From contig OZ038378.1 in the NCBI GenBank assembly GCA_964036045.1, positions 16,678,001-16,742,000 on the forward strand: DNA of 64,000 nucleotides, in the 5' to 3' direction. Source of the stretch: Eutreptiella sp. 'Long Island Sound 2002' (lineage: Eukaryota; Protista; Euglenida). The notes under the pieces were generated by a model. It searched no databases. It saw nothing but the letters and a program-made list of their open reading frames with translations, and was not told the origin of the DNA. A program made the translations under genes and the position numbers. Shown piece by piece: positions 3,529-21,760 of this stretch; positions within the stretch are counted from its first letter, which is position 1, and every line of letters starts with the position of its first letter.

Positions 3529-3959
3529 GATGCGGTGGTTGCCCGTGCGCAGCAGCTGAACCTGCGCATCGCAGCGCTGCCGAACACCACCTCAGACTCT
3601 CCCCCTGACGACGGTCTGGAGAGCGGCTATGCAGAGATCAAACGAGGGAACCCCGACTTCGTAATGGCGTGCATTTACTCCGCGAAGTGCCCGCGTCTGA
3701 TCAGTCTGTCCCGGACCGAATACCTGCCGGCGGGCATGTCCGTGTCAACGTGCATCGGGACCGCCGCCACCAACGCCAACCCTGACGCCTCGTACCTCGG
3801 GGCTAGGCAGATGTGGCACGAGGCAGCCCGCGGGCCGGACTACAGCCCCAAGTGGGCGGCTGCTGAGTGCCTCAACGCTCCGGGCAACCCATGCCCCATG
3901 TTCCCACAGACTGCTTTCCGGAAGTCCCCGGCGCCGGCGCAGTTCCTGGAGCAGTTCAG
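3529..3959 (+). CDS. Exon 3 of the PBP1-domain protein
   Basis: Acceptor CCTGTCAG|GAT. Encodes DAVVARAQQLNLRI...EIKRGNPDFVMACIY...AQFLEQF with GC3-rich codons. Donor CAG|GTGCG at 3960, phase 2. Confidence 0.8.
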
Positions 3960-9471: not shown

Positions 9472-10119
<648 letters not shown>

Positions 10120-12613
10120 GTGATGCAGAACTGAATTGGGGATAGGAAAGGTCCACTGTCCGGAACTGCACTTGCTCATTCTCTACCAACAGACCGAAAG
10201 ACGTCTAGGACAGCTCTGCTGTTCCTGAGGAGTTTTCTTTCAACCGCTTTTCTTGCTTCGTTCTTGTCTCGCGGTTCCCAACGTGTGTGTGTGTGTGTGT
10301 GTCCGCAAGGACCAGTAGCAGAAGACCGTGCACCAACCACACCGGTGCGTCTTCTGTGGCGGCGCGCAAGAGGAGCAGTCCCACAGGCATTTCTTTTTAA
10401 TCTCACCCAAGACCTGGCTTGCGCCACCCTTTGTGGTGGTATCCGCGCCCTTGCCCCACAGCTCCACCCTGGAGACAGGGCCATCTGGATGGGGGCATGG
10501 GCGCGCCCAGCGGTGTCTTGGGCCGCAGATTTTCTCTGTCCTCCTCCTCCTCCTCCTCCAATCTGTCTCTCTCGTATCAATTCCCATGCCTGGGAGCACA
10601 TTCGTACACCCATCCACTTGAGTATCTGTCCGGGGTCGCAAACGCAAAAAGGTGTCGCTCCCAACGGAAGGGCGGGAGTTTGACTTTTCGCTCCCATTTG
10701 GGTGCATGCTGGCGCTAGCCAAGAGGGACTGTGCCCCGAAAAGGGGATGAACCTCTGCCAGTGGGGCAGCAAAAGGCATAAGATTCATAGCATTTCAATG
10801 AAGGGTGTCATGGATCTCAATATCGGCAGGTTTGAATGCGCAGATCAAAATTCAAAAGCGCCAACTTTTGGCGCCATGACATTTGCAGTAAGAAGTTGTT
10901 GTAAGAATCGCAGATACTGGGCGCATGTTTCTACCCTGTTTGGTGCTAATTTGCGTCTTTTGAGACGTGTGGGCCTATATTCTCAGCACGTTTGCTGATG
11001 CCGCTGCCGTCGCTTCTCCACTATGTTGACATGGTCGGCAGACGCCCTGAAAGGTAAATTCATGCCCTATGAAACTGGCCGCACTGTGTCATCATCAAAC
11101 AATGCTAATCCCGGACGATGCCAAATTTGTATTTGCTGCATTCATGCGCCACGTCTTCAAACAGGGAGACGGCCTCTGCCAGCAGAGCTGCCGTCGGGTG
11201 GAGTCCCTCTGGCTGCGCCCTCTGTCCGCCCATGATCGGCGGATGTATAAATACCCTGGTGGCAGGTCACAAGAGTGACCTGCCTGTGACCTGGTGCTCC
11301 TGCTGCGCACCGACCACCCCTGTGACCCCTTCCTCGCACTGGACTCCGATATGAGCGGGCTCTCCCTGCCAATCTCCTCCGGGCACGGCCATCTTGCAGG
11401 AAGACCATCTCAGCCCCCAAGGCCCACCTCCTGCTCCCCCACTGCCGCTGGTCTTTAGCCTGGGTTGAATGGCACTGGTCTTGGCCCGACACCTGACGGG
11501 ATCAGCGTTGGGGTGCCATCGTGGTCAATCAACGTTGATGCGAAACCGTCCTGTGGGGCATTTTGCGTTACAGTCCTCGCCCAGGCCAGTGCACGCTCTG
11601 TAATTGTCACATGCAAGACCCGCACGTGCGTTATGTGTGCCCCTTGCATCCTCTTCCATCCGCTATCAGTGCCCTTTGCGTGCTATTGGCATGCCCTGTG
11701 TGTACCCTGTGTATGCCCAGGGTGGGTGCCTGGGGTGCGTGCCCGGCACGTGCCTTGTGGTGCACGTCTTTTTTCCGGCTTTTGGGTCATTATAATCCTT
11801 CATGCGTTTTTTTTCAACCATCCGGTGACCTGAGCCCTATACTCTCGCCGCCATATTTTTCGTAGGATCCTCAACAATGGCGCCAGGCCATCAATTCAAG
11901 CCACCATTGCCTGCGCTGGGGCCGAGATGCTGTTCCGCGCCCTTGTACGGGCCAATTCTCTGGACCCTGATTTGGTTGAGGCGCAGGTCAAGGCTGCGGA
12001 CGAGATCACATTCTTTGGCCGCATCCGCTTCACTCCGTACGGGCAGCTGGACCGCCCCCCAAACATCGTCCAGTACGATCAGAGCAACCAACTACAAATT
12101 GTGTTCCCAGACGACGCCAAGACCATGGAATATGTGTACCCCGCTCCAAGTTTCAGTTATCGGGACTGCTTGGAGGTACTAAGAATCAGAGGGCTCGGGT
12201 GTCTGCAGGCAGGGCGCTGGGTTGAATGTTGTGAAGGGTTTGGAACGGTTGTGGAGGGTTGTGGAGGGTTGTGGGGGGTGATGGTGCTGGAACCAAATGA
12301 AGTGGCTGGGTTGACTTACCCATGGGAAGATCGACGGAGCACGGGCCCTAGACCTAGAACCCAGGCCCCCTCTGATCCCTGATGGCCCTTGTGCACACAG
12401 GGCTGTTCTTGAAGTGCCAGTGCCTGTTCTGCGGTGCTCAGGGCCGCGTTTGAACTGCAATTGTCCGTGCTCCAGTGCACAGGGCTGCGCACAGGGCTGC
12501 ATTTGAACAGCAATCTCCTGCACTCCATTGTACAGGGCCAGGTTTGAACTGCCAGCGCCTGTGCGCTGGTGCACCCCGCCACCCCGTGTACTACTCTGGC
12601 TCCCCTGCCCTAG
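10120..12613. repeat. 2494-bp host segment X, copy A (direct repeat of 19267-21760)
   Basis: All ORF-track translations recur identically at +9147. The match ends at CTGCCCTAG. Confidence 0.95.
11866..12175 (+). CDS. Exon 4 (copy A) of the PBP1-domain protein
   Basis: Acceptor TTTTTCGTAG|G complements the phase-2 end of exon 3 (AG+G = Arg). Encodes ILNNGARPSIQATIACAGAEMLFRALVRANSLD...FFGRIRFTPYGQ...VQYDQ...IVFP...YVYPAPSFSYRDCLE, matching the PBP1 C-terminal pattern 'G.i.Fd..Gq...vvQ...vyP'. Donor GAG|GTACT. Confidence 0.85.
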
Positions 12614-13030
12614 TGCTGTCGGAAATGCATTGTACGACGCGTCGGGGCGTCGTACAAGGCGTCGGGGCCCGACGCGTCGGGAGCGTACGACGCGTCGTAC
12701 AGTGTCGTACAAGGCGTCGGGGCCCGACGCGTCGGGGATGTACGACGCGTCGTACAGTGTCGTACAAGGTGTCGTACAGCACCAACACCGTACGACACAG
12801 TACGACACAGTACGACACAGTACGACACAGTACGACACAGTACGACACAGTACGACACAGTACGTCATAGTACGACACAGTACCGACACAGTACGTCACC
12901 CACAGACGTATACATATGTAGACATAAACACATGGTAAATGGAAAAGAAAACAGATTGGTCAGAACGGGGGGAAAAATGGGTCCAAATGCGTCTCCATTT
13001 TGGTCAAAACAGTCCAAAAGGAAAAGGGGA
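12614..13030. repeat. Left compound terminal inverted repeat of the KDZ element
   Basis: TACGACGCGTCG blocks, a (TACGACACAG)n array, then a spacer whose reverse complement resembles TTTTGGACCTGTTTTGACC...TGACCAAT of the right end. Confidence 0.8.
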
Positions 13031-13035
13031 AACCT

Positions 13036-13560
13036 CAAATATTGGCACTTCGCGTCTACAACATGCCGACAGTGTCTACAATTAGCAGGCCGCGTCTACC
13101 TGTGGTGCACAGTGTCTACAGACCCCAGACCGCCCTCCCCCTGTGTGCGGGTAAACGATGGCAGCGGACCGTTTTGGGGGAAGGGGGCCTTCGGCCCCCT
13201 TCCCAAATATTGGCACTTCGCGTCTACAACATGCCGACAGTGTCTACAATTAGCAGGCCGCGTCTACCTGTGGCGCACAGTGTCTACAGACCCCAGACCA
13301 CCCTCCCCCTCTAGGCGGGTAAACGATGGCAGCGGACCGTTTTGGGGGAAGGGGGCCTTCGGCCCCCTTCCCAAATATTGGCACTTCGCGTCTACAACAT
13401 GCCGACAGTGTCTACAATTAGCAGGCCGCGTCTACCTGTGGTGCACAGTGTCTACAGACCCCAGACCGCCCTCCCCCTCTAGGCGGGTAAACGATGGCAG
13501 CGGACCGTTTTGGGGGAAGGGGGCCTTCGGCCCCCTTCCCAATTATGCCGACAATGTGTA
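13036..13560. repeat. Three 168-bp tandem subterminal repeats plus a partial fourth
   Basis: Unit starts (CAAATATTGG) at 13036, 13204 and 13372, partial at 13540. Each has four GTCTAC motifs and a 12-bp hairpin GGGAAGGGGGCC-TTC-GGCCCCCTTCCC. Confidence 0.95.
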
Positions 13561-13782
13561 CAGTCCCACTGTCGTAGTTTCTGCCATTGGTGTCCCTATT
13601 TGATGTTCCACGACTTTTTCAATTTTAGTCGTGAACCTTGCTATAGGTCGCAGTGTCCCAAGTGCACTACCTGTTTGCCGCTGCTGATACAAACCGAAAA
13701 GAAAAATTGTGTCTAATGTTTGCCATTGCCACCAGTGTCCCAATTCTTGGACTTGTATGCCCCTTGTGGTGTACCAAGTGTT

Positions 13783-16700
13783 TTAAATATTGCATTCAAA
13801 TGTGTGCCATAGGCCTGTGTGTCCCAATTTCTGCAGCTGTTGACCACACCGCGTGCACTTGGAATTTTGTAGTTGTAAGTAGGAGGCTTGCCCTGTTGTA
13901 GAATACCTAATTTTTTTGCACTTCCTCACGCTGTGCATTTGAAAGTGGAGACCCTTGGGACAGTCACAAAAGATTGCGTCCTCGCCCCGCAATGCATCAT
14001 TGAAGCATAGAACACAGTGAAAAACCACCTGTAGGTGACTGTGAGTAAGCCCAACAAAAGACAGAGGTTGCCTGTGGACAGAGAGTTGAAATGAAAAACA
14101 GCTTCAGGGCCTCGTAGCAACCGGTGGCTCAACCTGCAACTTGTCATGCCACTGTTGCCGGCTAATTTCGCATGTCACCAAGGGCGCAGGCACCAGCCCA
14201 TCTCCAGTCAAAGCCAGCCACAGGACACACAAAGTTTTTTGAGTACCCTTCTGCAGGAAGTAAAGGAAACAGAGGTTGAAGGTTTGCAGGTACACCAACA
14301 AGGCCTGGAATGCCAACATTGCTGGCATGTTGGGTCTGTTGGAGAACAAACTGTTCCACAGTTTGCGAACGCAAAGCGGCAATTTGCCCTTGACCTGGGT
14401 CAATGTACGCGCGAGAACAAATGCATACAAATGCGGAGCCATCCCACAGGGGGAATTCGACAATGCCTGAAAAGCGGCAGACTCCCTCCGGATATCCCAA
14501 GCACCACCAATAGGGACAGGTATGTTTCTGGTAACGAACACCTGGCGCTCCAAGAAGGAAAACGGGATGTGCAGTTTCAACAACACAACTGCGCGGGCAG
14601 ACTCTGGGAGAGGCTCTGCATGAAATACAGCTCGTGCTTGTGGCCTCCTGCCCAGTACAGGCAAAGCATTTGGGGGATCGGCGTGCACAGCAGGGGAGAG
14701 AGCTCCAATGGGAGGAACAGGGGCGTGAGATTGAGATGGAGGAGCAGCGGCGTGAGTTGCAGGGGAAGGTAGAACCGGGCCGCCAGCAGGCACATCAACA
14801 GTAGACGTCACAGGGCGCGGCACTGATGCAGGGCCAGGTTCCAAATCTGTGCAGTGTTGCCGCAACAAAGAGGGAGGGACATCACTTTCCTCAACCTTGA
14901 CAGGGAGTGCAGAAGCATATCCGGAACCAAGAATAGGTGGTGTACTGGGCACAGGTGCCGTGGCAGCTTGGTCATCCTCATCATCGGAGATGACCACAAC
15001 GTCACCCTTATACAACTGAGACCCTGTGCGGCGCAATTTAGGCGGGGACGTTGAGGAGGGACCTCGTGACCGAACACGACCACTGCGTGAAGGCGAAACA
15101 GGCTCAGCCATGGAGCAAGCAATTGATGTGTGTAAAGGAGGCAATTGGGTGGTAGAGGTAGACACGGGTGGAGAACAAGGGACAGCAGCAGGTTGTGCCA
15201 AAGGTGGCGGAAGATCTGCCACGTTTGGAAGTGTGGTTGCAATTTGCGTTGTTGCAGGGGTGCGTGTGGGAAACTTGGCTTGCAGCGGTGGTGTGATTGT
15301 TAGGTGCGACGTCCGCGGGCTCAGAGCAACTTGCTCTGTGGAGGGTGTGTGTTCCAACGGTCTGAAAGGGTTGTATGTGGCAGGGGCATACTGCAAGTGG
15401 GACAATTCTCGAAGATGAAACTTGGATTGCTCTGCCAACCAATCTGCAAAATCGCGCGCCTTGGGGTTGGGAAAAGGGCCTACAACCCACGTCGTGGGTT
15501 GTTGGTGCTGCATGGAGACCTGATAATTTACGGGTTGGCATGCAGTTATGGCAGCAACGCAGCGGCCGCCCAAAATGAATCGGTTGTGGCCCTCAGCCAC
15601 ATTCACCAAAAAGAACAGGAAATTCGCTCCTTTGCGCCTATTTACAGCGTACCTGTGACGGCCCATTTGGCTGTTATTCTGCTCGCAAACACTGCTATTA
15701 ATACAGCACAGTTCTGGAGCATTGGACATGTTGTTCTTTTGGCAGGACGCAACGTGACATGTGCCATGGAATCTGTCTAGGAGATATCTCAGGGAACACA
15801 GGACGTTGTGTTTGCGAGAGGACTGCTCAAGCTGGCAACTAGTATCATACACAACATCTTCAAAAAACACTTTGGAGACGGCATGTCTCTCCCGCAAATC
15901 GTACAAAGTTTGCAAGACGAAATGCACACCTTCAGGAGCAATCATTTCCCGCAAATCAACAATCACTGAGCATGCACGATGGCACATGAGTACCCCACCA
16001 GTTGTACCTGGCACCACAACTACCTTTTTGGTACAACCCAGTTCCCCTGTCACCGTGTGGATGCTCTTTTGACCCGGTTTTGGCTTTGGTCTTCGCTTGG
16101 CAGTGGCAGTGTCTGCTGTGCTTTTCCCTTTACCTGTGCCCTGCGCCACCTGCACTGCCTGTTCCAGAAGACTAGCCTGAAAACTGTCCTCTTCATTGCC
16201 CTCTTGAACCTCCAAATTTTCAAAGGTTTGCGGCAATTTTCCAATGGAGTCCTCTTCTGAAACATACTCCTCATCAGGGTCCGTGTTACATGGTGAAGTG
16301 GGAGGGGTACCTGCGTGACATTGTGCAGAAGGTGCAGATTTTTTCTCTTCAGAATGCTGCAAACAAAACTGCGACTTGCCAATGGGATCCTTTGGGCATT
16401 GCAAGGACATGTTGAGGCCTGTCAAAGGATTTCGAGCCTTTTTGCCACGGCCAAAAGCACACACCTTTCTCGTGATTTTCTGTAGACCATCCACAAGTAG
16501 CACCTTTTCATAAGTGGCCAAGATGTCAAAAACTTCTGCATCACTCTTCCCAGCAAAACCAGGCAGACCCTGAACATGCTGGCGCCCTGCTTCTGTACAA
16601 CGGTGCCCTTTACTGGGCATACCTTCCTGCATGAAAAACGCTTCAACCTCACACACAACCTCATCAACACTTCTGAATAGCATCAAACCCTCACCACGGA

Positions 16701-17739
16701 CCTCTCTGAAGTATCGCAGGCCCCAATCCAAAAACACACCTTGCTGAAGAATGGACCTGTGAATCCCCACCAACCTTCCCTCAGACTGAAAACTGGTAAA
16801 TTGAGTCACCAAACGCTGGTGCAATTCATTGAGGTATCGCTGTTCAACACAGTATTGTTTTCTGTGCCCCCATATCAACCAACGTCTCGTCACTGTGAGA
16901 AGGCAACAAGTTTGGTCGATCTCAACACTGTTGTATGAATACAGGGCCAAACACACTGGACAAACACCCGTGTACAACATTAACACGTTTCCATGCAGAT
17001 CAACCACCCTCCTGGGCGGATAATCTCCTCCAATCGTCAGCTTATGCGGTGAATCACACCGCATGCAGTGCAGCGTCCAAGGAAGTAAATAAACGGGTAC
17101 AGCTCCAGGTATAATGTCTTGGCAGGCAATCAACTCACCACTCATGGAACATTTCTCTACTCGGACCAGGGCATTGATGATGATTTCAATGGAGGCCCTC
17201 TTTGTCACCGGCAGGATTCCTACAGTGGTGGTATACACTGAAACCATGGAGAGAAAGTGGTGCAAACGTGGTGAAGACAGTGGTTCTACTTTGGGGGAAC
17301 ACAACACAAACACCCATCAAGCCTTTTTTGTGATACACGTGCTTGACACCAATGCCATGGAATTGCAGACTGCAGTACAATGCATACCTGGTGAATGGGC
17401 ATTGAAGTCTGCCAAAATCCTGGTTGTGGCATCTGCATATCCCAGGAATTGGAAAAGGTGACGGTAATGGGGAAGATATTTACACAACCATCCATACACG
17501 CTGTCCCACACAGCCTTTTTATCAGACATGGTGCATGAGTGCCTGTGTAGCAGAGAAAAGGCTTTGGCCCCAACAGTGACACAGGCGTGTAACACCTTTT
17601 GAACCACCGCTTGGCTGGGGCGAGTAAGCACCATTGCCTTTTGTTGCAAGCCTGCATTAAATGAGCGAATGAGTGTAGCAGGGGGCATACGGTGGCATTG
17701 CTGTTGGAAAAGAACTTGAGAATGAGGGAAGCAATACAC
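13783..17739 (-). CDS. KDZ transposase, probably multi-exon: CxC5-like, CxC6-like, KDZ catalytic domain, P/S/T-rich linker, PHD-like finger
   Basis: Motifs CMRC...CPVCLALYSY, HRC...LLVDG...VCAF...C...FCLQH, VVYDTSCQL, LLDRFHGTCH...C, NSSVCEQNNS. Three same-frame ORFs (17317..17739, 14104..17313, 13783..14028) are separated by single TGA codons, each inside a candidate GT-AG intron (17387-17220; 14133-14029). Confidence 0.8.
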
Positions 17740-18559
17740 AAGACATTAGCAACCGCGTAGCCACCCTGATAATGTCCAATCGTTCCAATCGTTCCAAACG
17801 TTCCGTTCAGATGACCTTCAGCAACACAGACACAGCACAGAAAAATTTCTTGTTTGCAACATCCCTAACCTGTTGAAGTCCAGAAATGTGTGGAACCCGA
17901 GGGCAGGGGGCAAGAAGGCGGGGGTTGCCCAGGCGGGAGGGCAGGAGAGGAACTTACAGGTTTTTATTTTTAAATCCCACCCTGCTCTCTCGGACCCCTT
18001 GGGTGCCTGGGCGTCCTCTCCTCCCCCCCCAGTAGGGCAAGAAGGTGAAACCTGCCTGCCCAGGCACCCAGCCATCAAACAGCACCTGTTTAACTAAGAA
18101 AGGATGGTTCGCCAAAAATATAAAAATAAAATTTGCAAAGTGGTGCTGTTAGTGGCCCCCTGTGTTTAACTGACGTTTGTTTGTTTCTGGTCAGGGGCTG
18201 GTTGCTTCGGGGAAGGGGTCGAGAGCAGGGGGGAGGGGTTTAAGGGGTATGTGCACCTGTGAGTGACTGATAGGGTCCCCCCTGATGGGGGGACCCGTAG
18301 TAACACACATGAAATGATGTCCTGCACACCTGAATAGCTGTCCTACATCCACCAGAAACATGAAAAACCCACTACCCTGGTAACCAAAGTGATGCAAGAA
18401 TTTGACCGCGGAACCAGGGGTTGGCTCTTGCGCAAGGTGGTTCTTGGACACTAATCAAGCATCGTCCTGTAACAGCGAAGCAAGGGGCAGAATGGGGTAA
18501 AATGCATGGGCAGATCAGGGTAACCCTGCAGCCAACGTTCCTGAAAGGGAAAAAACCAA

Positions 18560-18667
18560 CAGGAGGTGTTAAGGAACTAACAAACTCTTTTGGACCTGTT
18601 TTGACCCATTTCGACCACAAAAAGTCATTTGAACCAATTTTGACCCCTTTTGACCAATATACATATA

Positions 18668-18701
<34 letters not shown>

Positions 18702-18714
18702 TATGTACATATAC

Positions 18715-18760
<46 letters not shown>

Positions 18761-19266
18761 ATCTATATATATATATATATATATATACATACATACATAC
18801 ATACATATATATACATATATATGTCGTACGACACTGTACAGTGTCGTACAGCGTCGTACAGTGTCGTACAGTGTCGTACCAGCGTCGTACGACACAGTAC
18901 GACGCGTCGTACTGCGTCGTACTGTGTCGTATTGTGTCGTACTGTGTCGTACTGTGTCGTACTATGTCGTACTGTGTCGTACTGTGTCGTACTGTGTCGT
19001 ACTGTGTCGTACTGTGTCGTACTGTGTCGTACTGTGTCGTACTGTGTCGTACTGTGTCGTACTGTGTCGTACTGTGTTGTACTGTGTCGTACAGTGTCGT
19101 ACTGTGTCGTACTGTGTCGTACAAGGTGTCGGGGCCCGACGCGTCGGGGATGTACGACGCGTCGTACAGTGTCGTACAAGGTGTCGGGGCCCGACGCGTC
19201 GGGGATGTACGACGCGTCGGGAGGTGTCGGGGCCCGACGCGTCGTAAAATCCCTACTTCGACAGTA
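18560..19266. repeat. Right compound terminal inverted repeat of the KDZ element
   Basis: Spacer, (TA)/(TG) microsatellite, (GTCGTACTGT)n array and GGGGCCCGACGCGTCG blocks. Confidence 0.8.
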
Positions 19267-21760
19267 GTGATGCAGAACTGAATTGGGGATAGGAAAGGTC
19301 CACTGTCCGGAACTGCACTTGCTCATTCTCTACCAACAGACCGAAAGACGTCTAGGACAGCTCTGCTGTTCCTGAGGAGTTTTCTTTCAACCGCTTTTCT
19401 TGCTTCGTTCTTGTCTCGCGGTTCCCAACGTGTGTGTGTGTGTGTGTGTCCGCAAGGACCAGTAGCAGAAGACCGTGCACCAACCACACCGGTGCGTCTT
19501 CTGTGGCGGCGCGCAAGAGGAGCAGTCCCACAGGCATTTCTTTTTAATCTCACCCAAGACCTGGCTTGCGCCACCCTTTGTGGTGGTATCCGCGCCCTTG
19601 CCCCACAGCTCCACCCTGGAGACAGGGCCATCTGGATGGGGGCATGGGCGCGCCCAGCGGTGTCTTGGGCCGCAGATTTTCTCTGTCCTCCTCCTCCTCC
19701 TCCTCCAATCTGTCTCTCTCGTATCAATTCCCATGCCTGGGAGCACATTCGTACACCCATCCACTTGAGTATCTGTCCGGGGTCGCAAACGCAAAAAGGT
19801 GTCGCTCCCAACGGAAGGGCGGGAGTTTGACTTTTCGCTCCCATTTGGGTGCATGCTGGCGCTAGCCAAGAGGGACTGTGCCCCGAAAAGGGGATGAACC
19901 TCTGCCAGTGGGGCAGCAAAAGGCATAAGATTCATAGCATTTCAATGAAGGGTGTCATGGATCTCAATATCGGCAGGTTTGAATGCGCAGATCAAAATTC
20001 AAAAGCGCCAACTTTTGGCGCCATGACATTTGCAGTAAGAAGTTGTTGTAAGAATCGCAGATACTGGGCGCATGTTTCTACCCTGTTTGGTGCTAATTTG
20101 CGTCTTTTGAGACGTGTGGGCCTATATTCTCAGCACGTTTGCTGATGCCGCTGCCGTCGCTTCTCCACTATGTTGACATGGTCGGCAGACGCCCTGAAAG
20201 GTAAATTCATGCCCTATGAAACTGGCCGCACTGTGTCATCATCAAACAATGCTAATCCCGGACGATGCCAAATTTGTATTTGCTGCATTCATGCGCCACG
20301 TCTTCAAACAGGGAGACGGCCTCTGCCAGCAGAGCTGCCGTCGGGTGGAGTCCCTCTGGCTGCGCCCTCTGTCCGCCCATGATCGGCGGATGTATAAATA
20401 CCCTGGTGGCAGGTCACAAGAGTGACCTGCCTGTGACCTGGTGCTCCTGCTGCGCACCGACCACCCCTGTGACCCCTTCCTCGCACTGGACTCCGATATG
20501 AGCGGGCTCTCCCTGCCAATCTCCTCCGGGCACGGCCATCTTGCAGGAAGACCATCTCAGCCCCCAAGGCCCACCTCCTGCTCCCCCACTGCCGCTGGTC
20601 TTTAGCCTGGGTTGAATGGCACTGGTCTTGGCCCGACACCTGACGGGATCAGCGTTGGGGTGCCATCGTGGTCAATCAACGTTGATGCGAAACCGTCCTG
20701 TGGGGCATTTTGCGTTACAGTCCTCGCCCAGGCCAGTGCACGCTCTGTAATTGTCACATGCAAGACCCGCACGTGCGTTATGTGTGCCCCTTGCATCCTC
20801 TTCCATCCGCTATCAGTGCCCTTTGCGTGCTATTGGCATGCCCTGTGTGTACCCTGTGTATGCCCAGGGTGGGTGCCTGGGGTGCGTGCCCGGCACGTGC
20901 CTTGTGGTGCACGTCTTTTTTCCGGCTTTTGGGTCATTATAATCCTTCATGCGTTTTTTTTCAACCATCCGGTGACCTGAGCCCTATACTCTCGCCGCCA
21001 TATTTTTCGTAGGATCCTCAACAATGGCGCCAGGCCATCAATTCAAGCCACCATTGCCTGCGCTGGGGCCGAGATGCTGTTCCGCGCCCTTGTACGGGCC
21101 AATTCTCTGGACCCTGATTTGGTTGAGGCGCAGGTCAAGGCTGCGGACGAGATCACATTCTTTGGCCGCATCCGCTTCACTCCGTACGGGCAGCTGGACC
21201 GCCCCCCAAACATCGTCCAGTACGATCAGAGCAACCAACTACAAATTGTGTTCCCAGACGACGCCAAGACCATGGAATATGTGTACCCCGCTCCAAGTTT
21301 CAGTTATCGGGACTGCTTGGAGGTACTAAGAATCAGAGGGCTCGGGTGTCTGCAGGCAGGGCGCTGGGTTGAATGTTGTGAAGGGTTTGGAACGGTTGTG
21401 GAGGGTTGTGGAGGGTTGTGGGGGGTGATGGTGCTGGAACCAAATGAAGTGGCTGGGTTGACTTACCCATGGGAAGATCGACGGAGCACGGGCCCTAGAC
21501 CTAGAACCCAGGCCCCCTCTGATCCCTGATGGCCCTTGTGCACACAGGGCTGTTCTTGAAGTGCCAGTGCCTGTTCTGCGGTGCTCAGGGCCGCGTTTGA
21601 ACTGCAATTGTCCGTGCTCCAGTGCACAGGGCTGCGCACAGGGCTGCATTTGAACAGCAATCTCCTGCACTCCATTGTACAGGGCCAGGTTTGAACTGCC
21701 AGCGCCTGTGCGCTGGTGCACCCCGCCACCCCGTGTACTACTCTGGCTCCCCTGCCCTAG
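19267..21760. repeat. 2494-bp host segment X, copy B, continuing into unique flank
   Basis: Starts GTGATGCAGAAC and ends CTGCCCTAG, then continues GACCTTGCTG rather than into transposon sequence. Confidence 0.95.
21013..21322 (+). CDS. Exon 4 (copy B), duplicate with the same splice sites
   Basis: Same sequence as 11866-12175 at offset +9147. ORF translations 11927..12382 and 21074..21529 are identical. Confidence 0.85.

Follow-up and report, generated by a model that had tools for sequence, protein, structure and literature searches.

A divergent, apparently young KDZ-superfamily transposon of a euglenid, with a supported first intron and a doubtful last exon

The window analysed here, a stretch of 64,000 nucleotides from the euglenid Eutreptiella sp. 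'Long Island Sound 2002' (contig OZ038378.1, positions 16,678,001 to 16,742,000), carries on its minus strand a complete copy of a transposon, called family A in what follows, which is a divergent member of the KDZ superfamily and no new kind of element. An earlier note on this DNA had described its positions 13783-17739 as a possibly intact KDZ transposase gene of Kyakuja type, with two introns and a C-terminal PHD-like finger that might read histones and guide targeting. The frames, GT-AG borders, in-frame TGA codons and cysteine pattern that it listed are all present where it placed them. Taking the evidence jointly, we regard it as likely that the element is an autonomous cut-and-paste KDZ transposon in which intron 1 is spliced and the proposed exon 3 is non-coding.

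The limits of the element were read from an alignment of 20 kb around each of its copies. Genome searches covered the 2.28-Gb assembly, and the DNA search returned three full-length copies, on contigs C1 (the window), C5 and C24. Their homology has sharp edges at window positions 19269 and 12612, the flanks of the three copies are unrelated to each other, and the termini read 5'-CACTACTGTCGAAG...CCGACAGCACT-3'. The element and its ends are the following (window coordinates throughout; repeats found with Tandem Repeats Finder, TRF):

12612..19269, minus strand: complete autonomous transposon copy of family A, 6,658 bp; homology with the C5 and C24 copies begins and ends exactly there
19232..19269, minus strand: 5' terminal imperfect inverted repeat, with CTGTCG and TACGACGCGTCGGG common to the 3' end
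18823..19219, minus strand: 5' subterminal arrays (TRF) containing the heptamer GTACGAC; candidate transposase-binding sites
12612..12899, minus strand: 3' subterminal arrays and 3' terminus (TRF and heptamer map)

The inverted repeat was obtained by aligning the first 130 nt of the element to the reverse complement of the last 130 nt. Within the arrays, units of 55 bp and 10 bp are found at both ends, repeated 2.1 times (19106-19219) and 28 times (18836-19122) on the 5' side, and 2.3 times (12649-12774) and 11 times (12785-12899) on the 3' side. All 50 of the GTACGAC/GTCGTAC heptamers fall within the first ~500 bp and the last ~400 bp of the element, with opposite orientation between the two ends and none in the intervening 5.7 kb. 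In the mechanism that we propose, the transposase would bind these arrays, confined to the outer 400-500 bp of both ends, would then cut at the imperfect inverted termini and would insert the element through a staggered cut of 8-9 bp.

Target duplications are readable at two of the copies, CTCCCAGC (8 bp) at C5 and CACAATGAC (9 bp) at C24. Exon 2 of the gene lacks a stop in every copy. Its divergence is 0.16% between the window and C5 copies and about 0.5% from C24, and its changes among the three, 6 synonymous and 13 non-synonymous, look neutral. Moreover, the terminal 70-mers gave 309 (5') and 473 (3') first-look candidates in the genome, and all 40 of those scored at each end were 100% identical; one pair, on a single strand, is separated by 1.9 kb (C2:175328993-175330898). 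From these hundreds of candidates, family A probably has hundreds of non-autonomous relatives. Given three near-identical copies and scored ends without a single difference, the family looks young, with an apparently intact gene in each full copy, and is probably still mobile. The suggestion of a possibly intact and recently active element is therefore borne out by three open, sharply delimited copies, and the genome-wide count of copies and of their divergence (three full copies, exon 2 0.16-0.5% apart) points the same way. The large non-autonomous population would probably depend on the three autonomous copies.

These data also bear on another account, in which there would be no active transposon and the copies would be host genes, domesticated or multiplied by segmental duplication, that form a small family. 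Full-length copies number only three, and the one in the window lacks a target duplication and lies within a local 2.49-kb duplication, as such an account might predict. However, host genes of this kind would need to share identical sharp termini within unrelated flanks on three contigs, 8-9-bp duplications at two of them, hundreds of candidate loci for the terminal 70-mers with 40 scored per end at 100% identity, a same-strand 70-mer pair 1.9 kb apart and a neutral substitution pattern, and we consider this account exceedingly improbable. As for the local duplication, the 5' flank of the window copy (19270-21758) duplicates 10123-12611 at 99.8% identity, and 10123-12611 in turn follows a partial 5' element end (9472-10122) with an identical junction. 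This layout, an end, a segment X, the element and X again, is as expected of an aberrant transposition of the sister-chromatid type.

The gene occupies the centre of the element, with splice borders marked here by a slash:

17389..17688, minus strand: exon 1, with start at ATG 17688 or 17529; open in all three copies
17220..17387, minus strand: intron 1, 168 nt, phase 1, CCAG/GTATGC...CTGTAG/GA; supported by paralogues
14134..17219, minus strand: exon 2, 1028 codons; open in all three copies and 29% identical to family B over residues 2-1023

The first frame, 17739-17388, opens with a GTG at 17739 and terminates in ...NAHSP plus one split G; the first ATG in this frame lies at 17688, and that at 17529 is better conserved. 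Conservation of exon 1 is limited to its last 37 codons (17499-17389), and the matches of exon 1 in the genome are the three copies and L034, a degenerate paralogue on contig C23 that is 33-43% identical (33% in exon 2). The equivalent block of L034 shares 16 of 37 residues with the end of exon 1 (VFTFLAQHLPNYRQLF...DFTAAHP). Because the conserved part is confined to these 37 codons and a Met stands just upstream of the block in both the family A gene and L034, translation may start at ATG 17529 rather than at 17688.

The interval assigned to intron 1 contains an in-frame TGA, after which the frame resumes as (G)ILPVTKR. In L034, the donor is identical (CCAG/GTATGCA) and follows the homologous ...HPG, and the acceptor TTGAG/GG falls at the homologous codon in phase 1, the intron itself being 643 nt long and unrelated in sequence. 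Similarly, family B, one of at least two further KDZ-type families in the genome (B, with a 1102-residue open frame at 20 or more loci, and C, with a 665-residue frame at dozens of loci), presents CACAG/GT at the equivalent codon and in the same phase. Four codons further upstream the family B frame closes, and the conserved residues G-x-LP-x-x-KR precede any Met. Searches with tblastn, a motif regular expression and a donor scan did not reveal an exon 1 in this family. Of the two introns originally proposed, the first is thus supported as a real spliceosomal intron of GT-AG type, because its position, phase and flanking coding sequence are kept in L034 and family B, and not by statistics; the second, discussed below, has no counterpart in a paralogue and does not rise above chance.

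Exon 2 keeps an open stretch of 1028 codons (17217-14134) that terminates in HDKLQ, and with exon 1 it would yield a predicted product of about 1,140 residues. Its layout comprises an N-terminal cysteine cluster, a helical region, an RNase H-like DDE core interrupted by a disordered insert, a Pro/Ser/Thr-rich linker (about residues 620-870) and a conserved C-terminal domain (about residues 870-1023). The 29% identity with family B includes this C-terminal domain of ~150 residues, and the domain order from the start of exon 2 onwards, as well as the position of the intron 1 acceptor, is the same in both families. On the other hand, family A has only three autonomous copies, and family B is devoid of any exon-3-like sequence.

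The catalytic residues predicted in the core, numbered from the start of exon 2, are encoded at:

16489..16491, minus strand: codon of D243, predicted first catalytic Asp, in VLLVDGLQKxxRKVC on strand beta-1; D in 31 of 35 relatives
15844..15846, minus strand: codon of D458, predicted second catalytic Asp, in VYDTSC; D in 62 of 64 relatives
15682..15684, minus strand: codon of E512, predicted catalytic Glu, in NSSVCEQ on a helix; E in 63 of 66 relatives

A word-index protein search matched nothing except the query protein itself. An exhaustive phmmer search with residues 1-620 revealed 84 relatives, the best with E-values of 2.7e-36 (residues 37-292) and 5.6e-23 (residues 385-579). Among the 43 relatives that span the catalytic region, 32 match Pfam KDZ at E<=1e-3 (with scores such as 46.9 bits for P0036 and 36.1 bits for P0058), two match CxC5 and four match Chromo. 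The nearest clusters in the ESM Atlas, with a score of 0.94 and 201 shared features, are KDZ/CxC5/CxC6 clusters from rotifers and basidiomycetes. At the N-terminus, the cluster HC-x2-C...C-x2-C is conserved in families A and B and in L034, and it aligns weakly (E 6.5) within the CxC5 domain of P0029. Membership of the KDZ superfamily is transitive, since the direct Pfam score of the protein stays under the gathering cut-off, but on these homologies it is solid, and the identification of a KDZ transposase by the earlier note is upheld by them together with the DDE motif and the RNase H-like model.

Between the second Asp and the Glu there is a conserved Cys/His cluster, C461, H484, H488 and C492 (69/69); in the 88-row alignment, D481, H484, H488 and C492 are conserved in LLDRFHGTCHVASC. 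An AlphaFold2 (AF2) model of residues 120-620 built with this alignment reached a mean confidence (predicted local distance difference test, pLDDT) of 80.3 and a predicted template modelling score of 0.75, with D243 on model strand 120-126 and E512 on model helix 391-400; its low-confidence stretches include the acidic/basic insert at about residues 295-385. A Foldseek comparison with the PDB returned nothing significant, its top rows being weak integrase matches. An exhaustive structural search placed at the top ISCth4 (Z 10.7 over 212 residues), Tn5 (Z 9.1), retroviral integrases (Z 8-9) and piggyBac (Z 7.8), together with TnsB, the P element, Hermes and RAG1; almost every one of the best neighbours is a DDE transposase or an integrase. 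Because of these neighbours, the modelled core is assigned to the RNase H-like DDE enzymes, with a presumed catalytic activity. The likeness to IS256-family ISCth4 and to Tn5 (the latter over 229 residues) is one of fold only: these bacterial proteins are about 10% identical to the euglenid one and lack its Cys/His cluster, long linkers and C-terminal domain.

Within the superfamily, target duplications of 8 bp have been described for both Zisupton and Dileera, and Kyakuja is characterised by 7-bp duplications, 5'-CA..TG-3' ends and no terminal inverted repeats (PMC12730594). The euglenid element shows 8 bp at C5, 9 bp at C24 and none at the window copy, and its termini are CACTAC...GCACT. The name 'Kyakuja-type' is therefore unsupported, as the duplications are 8-9 bp long and not 7 bp; such lengths would fit Zisupton or Dileera. 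With Zisupton of fish and Dileera of rust fungi the element shares a KDZ-type DDE core (by transitive homology), a duplication of 8 bp at the C5 copy, terminal inverted repeats and a large single transposase with N-terminal cysteine clusters. It differs from them in being at most 35% identical to any external relative, mostly over fragments, in its sub-threshold KDZ score and missing CxC profile match, in its one 9-bp duplication, in its short and imperfect inverted repeats with long subterminal heptamer arrays, and in its euglenid host. Kyakuja elements of Agaricomycotina such as Laccaria belong to the same superfamily and also have weak or absent inverted repeats, whereas the element described here has 8-9-bp duplications and CAC...ACT ends, carries no TET/JBP gene and has Atlas neighbours in CxC5/CxC6-type clusters rather than in the CxC2-type fungal ones. 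Not one of the papers in the collection searched mentions Euglena together with Zisupton.

The 3' end of the gene is where the original description and our reading part. The features concerned are:

14029..14133, minus strand: proposed intron 2, 105 nt, phase 0, CAG/GTTGAG...CTACAG/GTG; unproven
14104..14106, minus strand: TGA that ends the frame if this interval is unspliced, with the tail ...HDKLQVEPPVATRP before the stop; preferred end of the coding sequence
13783..14028, minus strand: proposed exon 3; C4HC3-like pattern, without support for a PHD finger
13601..13893, minus strand: 83-bp satellite-like repeat in tandem, about 3.6 diverged units, located with an nhmmer profile from the array of locus L027

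The proposed exon 3 frame (14028-13786) has 81 codons with the pattern C-x2-C-x12-C-x-C-x8-H-x4-C-x20-C-x2-C. The interval before it was compared with chance by accepting every GT in the 60 nt that precede the stop, together with every AG at a distance of 40-400 nt downstream, over 1000 dinucleotide shuffles of the downstream sequence. An extension of at least 81 codons appeared in 57.5% of the trials, and for this reason interval 2 does not stand above chance on sequence grounds; the real sequence offers 72 GT-AG combinations, eight of which yield 73 codons or more. We consider it doubtful that this interval is spliced.

Moreover, exon 3 is present in only two of the three copies, because the C24 copy matches the others to 4 nt past the acceptor and then has 14024-13590 (436 bp) replaced by 1,043 bp of other sequence (L008:3193-4236; C24 about 5423385-5424428). 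Genome searches did not find exon 3 in family B, in family C or in an isolated C-terminal-domain fragment on contig C18; they found only its own two copies and 83-bp satellite units with stops, which elsewhere read ...NSWCTSRGQQ.... The frame of family B terminates 28 residues past the shared C-terminal domain, and the C18 fragment remains homologous for about 40 nt past the proposed donor, where it has no GT. The satellite profile matches 13893-13845, 13834-13763, 13755-13679 and 13663-13601 (E-values from 9e-5 to 2.5e-13) and nothing in exon 2, which places the final 110 nt of exon 3, together with the stop codon and the last C-x2-C, in satellite-derived sequence. Arrays of this satellite occur at many loci, such as L027:570-1725 (C10 near 8389434-8390589; TRF), L029 and L030. 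The 168-bp array of the element was also considered as a source of exon 3 and was rejected, as the two have no similarity.

In the reading that we prefer, the coding sequence would end around the TGA at 14104-14106, and 'exon 3' would be 3' non-coding sequence entering the 83-bp satellite array, with a fortuitous Cys/His pattern. It is also conceivable that interval 2 is spliced and that exon 3 is translated as a young, family-specific tail made partly of satellite DNA and without any PHD function. The donor, the polypyrimidine tract with its acceptor and an open frame identical in two copies would agree with such a tail, as would the codon usage of the frame, and family B itself ends in a short, unrelated tail of 28 residues. 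However, exon 3 is missing from C24, families B and C and the C18 fragment; a second possible acceptor, at 14072, follows a stronger pyrimidine tract and would yield a different short tail; and the homology of the C18 fragment passes the donor, its unspliced frame stopping at the same codon in one possible alignment. A translated young tail is thus judged unlikely.

A PHD-like finger at the end of the protein is less probable still. Canonical PHD fingers are spaced C-x2-C-x8-21-C-x2-4-C-x4-5-H-x2-C-x12-46-C-x2-C, from which exon 3 departs in its C-x-C, its x8-H and its H-x4-C; the C-x-C spacing is nearer to that of RING-CH fingers. Exon 3 matched neither PHD nor RING families in Pfam (E<=1) or in NCBIfam, and none of 177,635 PDB sequences gave a PHD or RING hit at E<=10. 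With the C4HC3 fingers of PHD and RING-CH type it shares the order of the eight Cys/His ligands, without their profile match, confident fold or conservation, and its last ligand pair lies in satellite-derived DNA. The explanation advanced by the earlier note, with both intervals spliced and a C4HC3 histone-reader finger guiding the choice of target, draws on GT-AG borders in compatible phase, on an 81-codon frame that holds eight Cys/His in the right order and has the best codon-usage score, and on the chromatin domains known in KDZ relatives (Chromo in 4 of 43). It is opposed by the missing PHD/RING match (Pfam and PDB sequences), the non-canonical spacing and a pLDDT of 40, by the absence of exon 3 from C24, families B and C and the C18 fragment, by the location of the last CxxC in a satellite unit and by a GT-AG interval at chance level; as a whole this explanation is very improbable, and a functional PHD-like finger in exon 3 is likewise hardly to be expected. 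Once the finger fails, histone-guided targeting has no remaining basis. Equally far from probable is that exon 3 represents a genuine, very young exon providing a new zinc-binding C-terminal module, partly from the 83-bp satellite array, that alters targeting; if true, it would be a domain birth de novo caught in the act in a transposase.

Several results weigh against the reading of an autonomous KDZ transposon with a non-coding exon 3. The direct match of exon 2 to Pfam KDZ (PF18758; residues 410-500, profile positions 80-171) scores 13.6 bits (E 0.056), under the gathering cut-off of 26.6 bits, and it was the sole match when each exon was scanned against Pfam and NCBIfam. Families B and C had no KDZ match in the Pfam scan, and none of families A, B and C matched a CxC1-CxC6 hidden Markov model at E<=1, so that among the profiles named in the earlier note only KDZ was recovered, below threshold, and CxC5, CxC6 and PHD were not. 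No target duplication was found at the flanks of the window copy, since its 5' flank is the 2.49-kb duplicate, and the readable duplications are two, of unequal length (8 and 9 bp). In the case of exon 3, the frame is open for 81 codons behind a good polypyrimidine tract and AG, and among the three frames its codon usage scores closest to that of exon 2, a weak point in its favour; the single-sequence AF2 model, which did not yield the anticipated zinc finger (pLDDT 40.1, no residue above 50), is weak negative evidence. The coding sequence would most likely terminate at TGA 14104-14106 or shortly after.

For a euglenid, these data add a well-delimited, apparently active autonomous transposon of KDZ type. 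Its three intact master copies, defined ends and conserved intron should help the annotation of the repeat-rich Euglena genome, and the element may be of use as a native transposon tool.

Inside the element, the order is an (AT)n tract, a 473-bp module, the gene, the 83-bp satellite-like units and a 168-bp array. Two of these modules are repeats that also occur in family B:

17823..18295, minus strand: 473-bp module that directly precedes the gene and contains a TATA-like stretch, TTTAAAAATAAAAA; high-copy dispersed repeat
13036..13546, minus strand: 168-bp tandem array (TRF), 3 units in the window copy

Both are far more alike between families A and B than the proteins are. The 473-bp module is 83% identical to the sequence at the equivalent position in family B, against 29% for the transposases, and the 168-bp array is 80-89% identical to that of family B (L023 and L024 joined, positions 10118-11059). 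The number of 168-bp units varies among copies, from 3 in the window to ~6 at C5 and ~12 at C24. The 473-bp module has 1,967 first-look candidates genome-wide, the top 40 of which are 93-100% identical and include the three copies of the element itself; it may serve both families as a promoter module or be a small element in its own right. Weak matches to the 83-bp satellite also occur downstream of the family B gene. The ends of the sister families carry arrays of short words as in family A, but with different terminal words.

The segment that replaces exon 3 in the C24 copy holds a gene resembling that of the spliced-leader RNA (ACACTTTCTGGGTGTCTATTTTTTTTTCG/GTAT), with one mismatch and one extra T, flanked on each side by one copy of a unit a few hundred base pairs long; no tRNA (ARAGORN) and no Rfam family were detected in it. 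The spliced-leader sequence of Euglena has been published (PMC6242988, PMC5654406), and when followed by GT it has 1,358 exact matches in the genome, against 0 for the reversed control; on this count the host was assigned to Euglena.

Two further loci deserve mention. In a copy of family C (L022:3566-3619; C15 near 14536565-14536618), two homologous blocks lie in one frame around an unaligned gap of ~55 nt that contains an in-frame stop (3608-3610) and may be a very short intron. Finally, the C-terminal-domain fragment on C18 (L050:4463-4812; C18 near 8031462-8031811) is 59% identical to that of family A, frameshifted and adjoined by an inverted piece of the 168-bp repeat; it is an old and rearranged remnant of a closer relative of this family.

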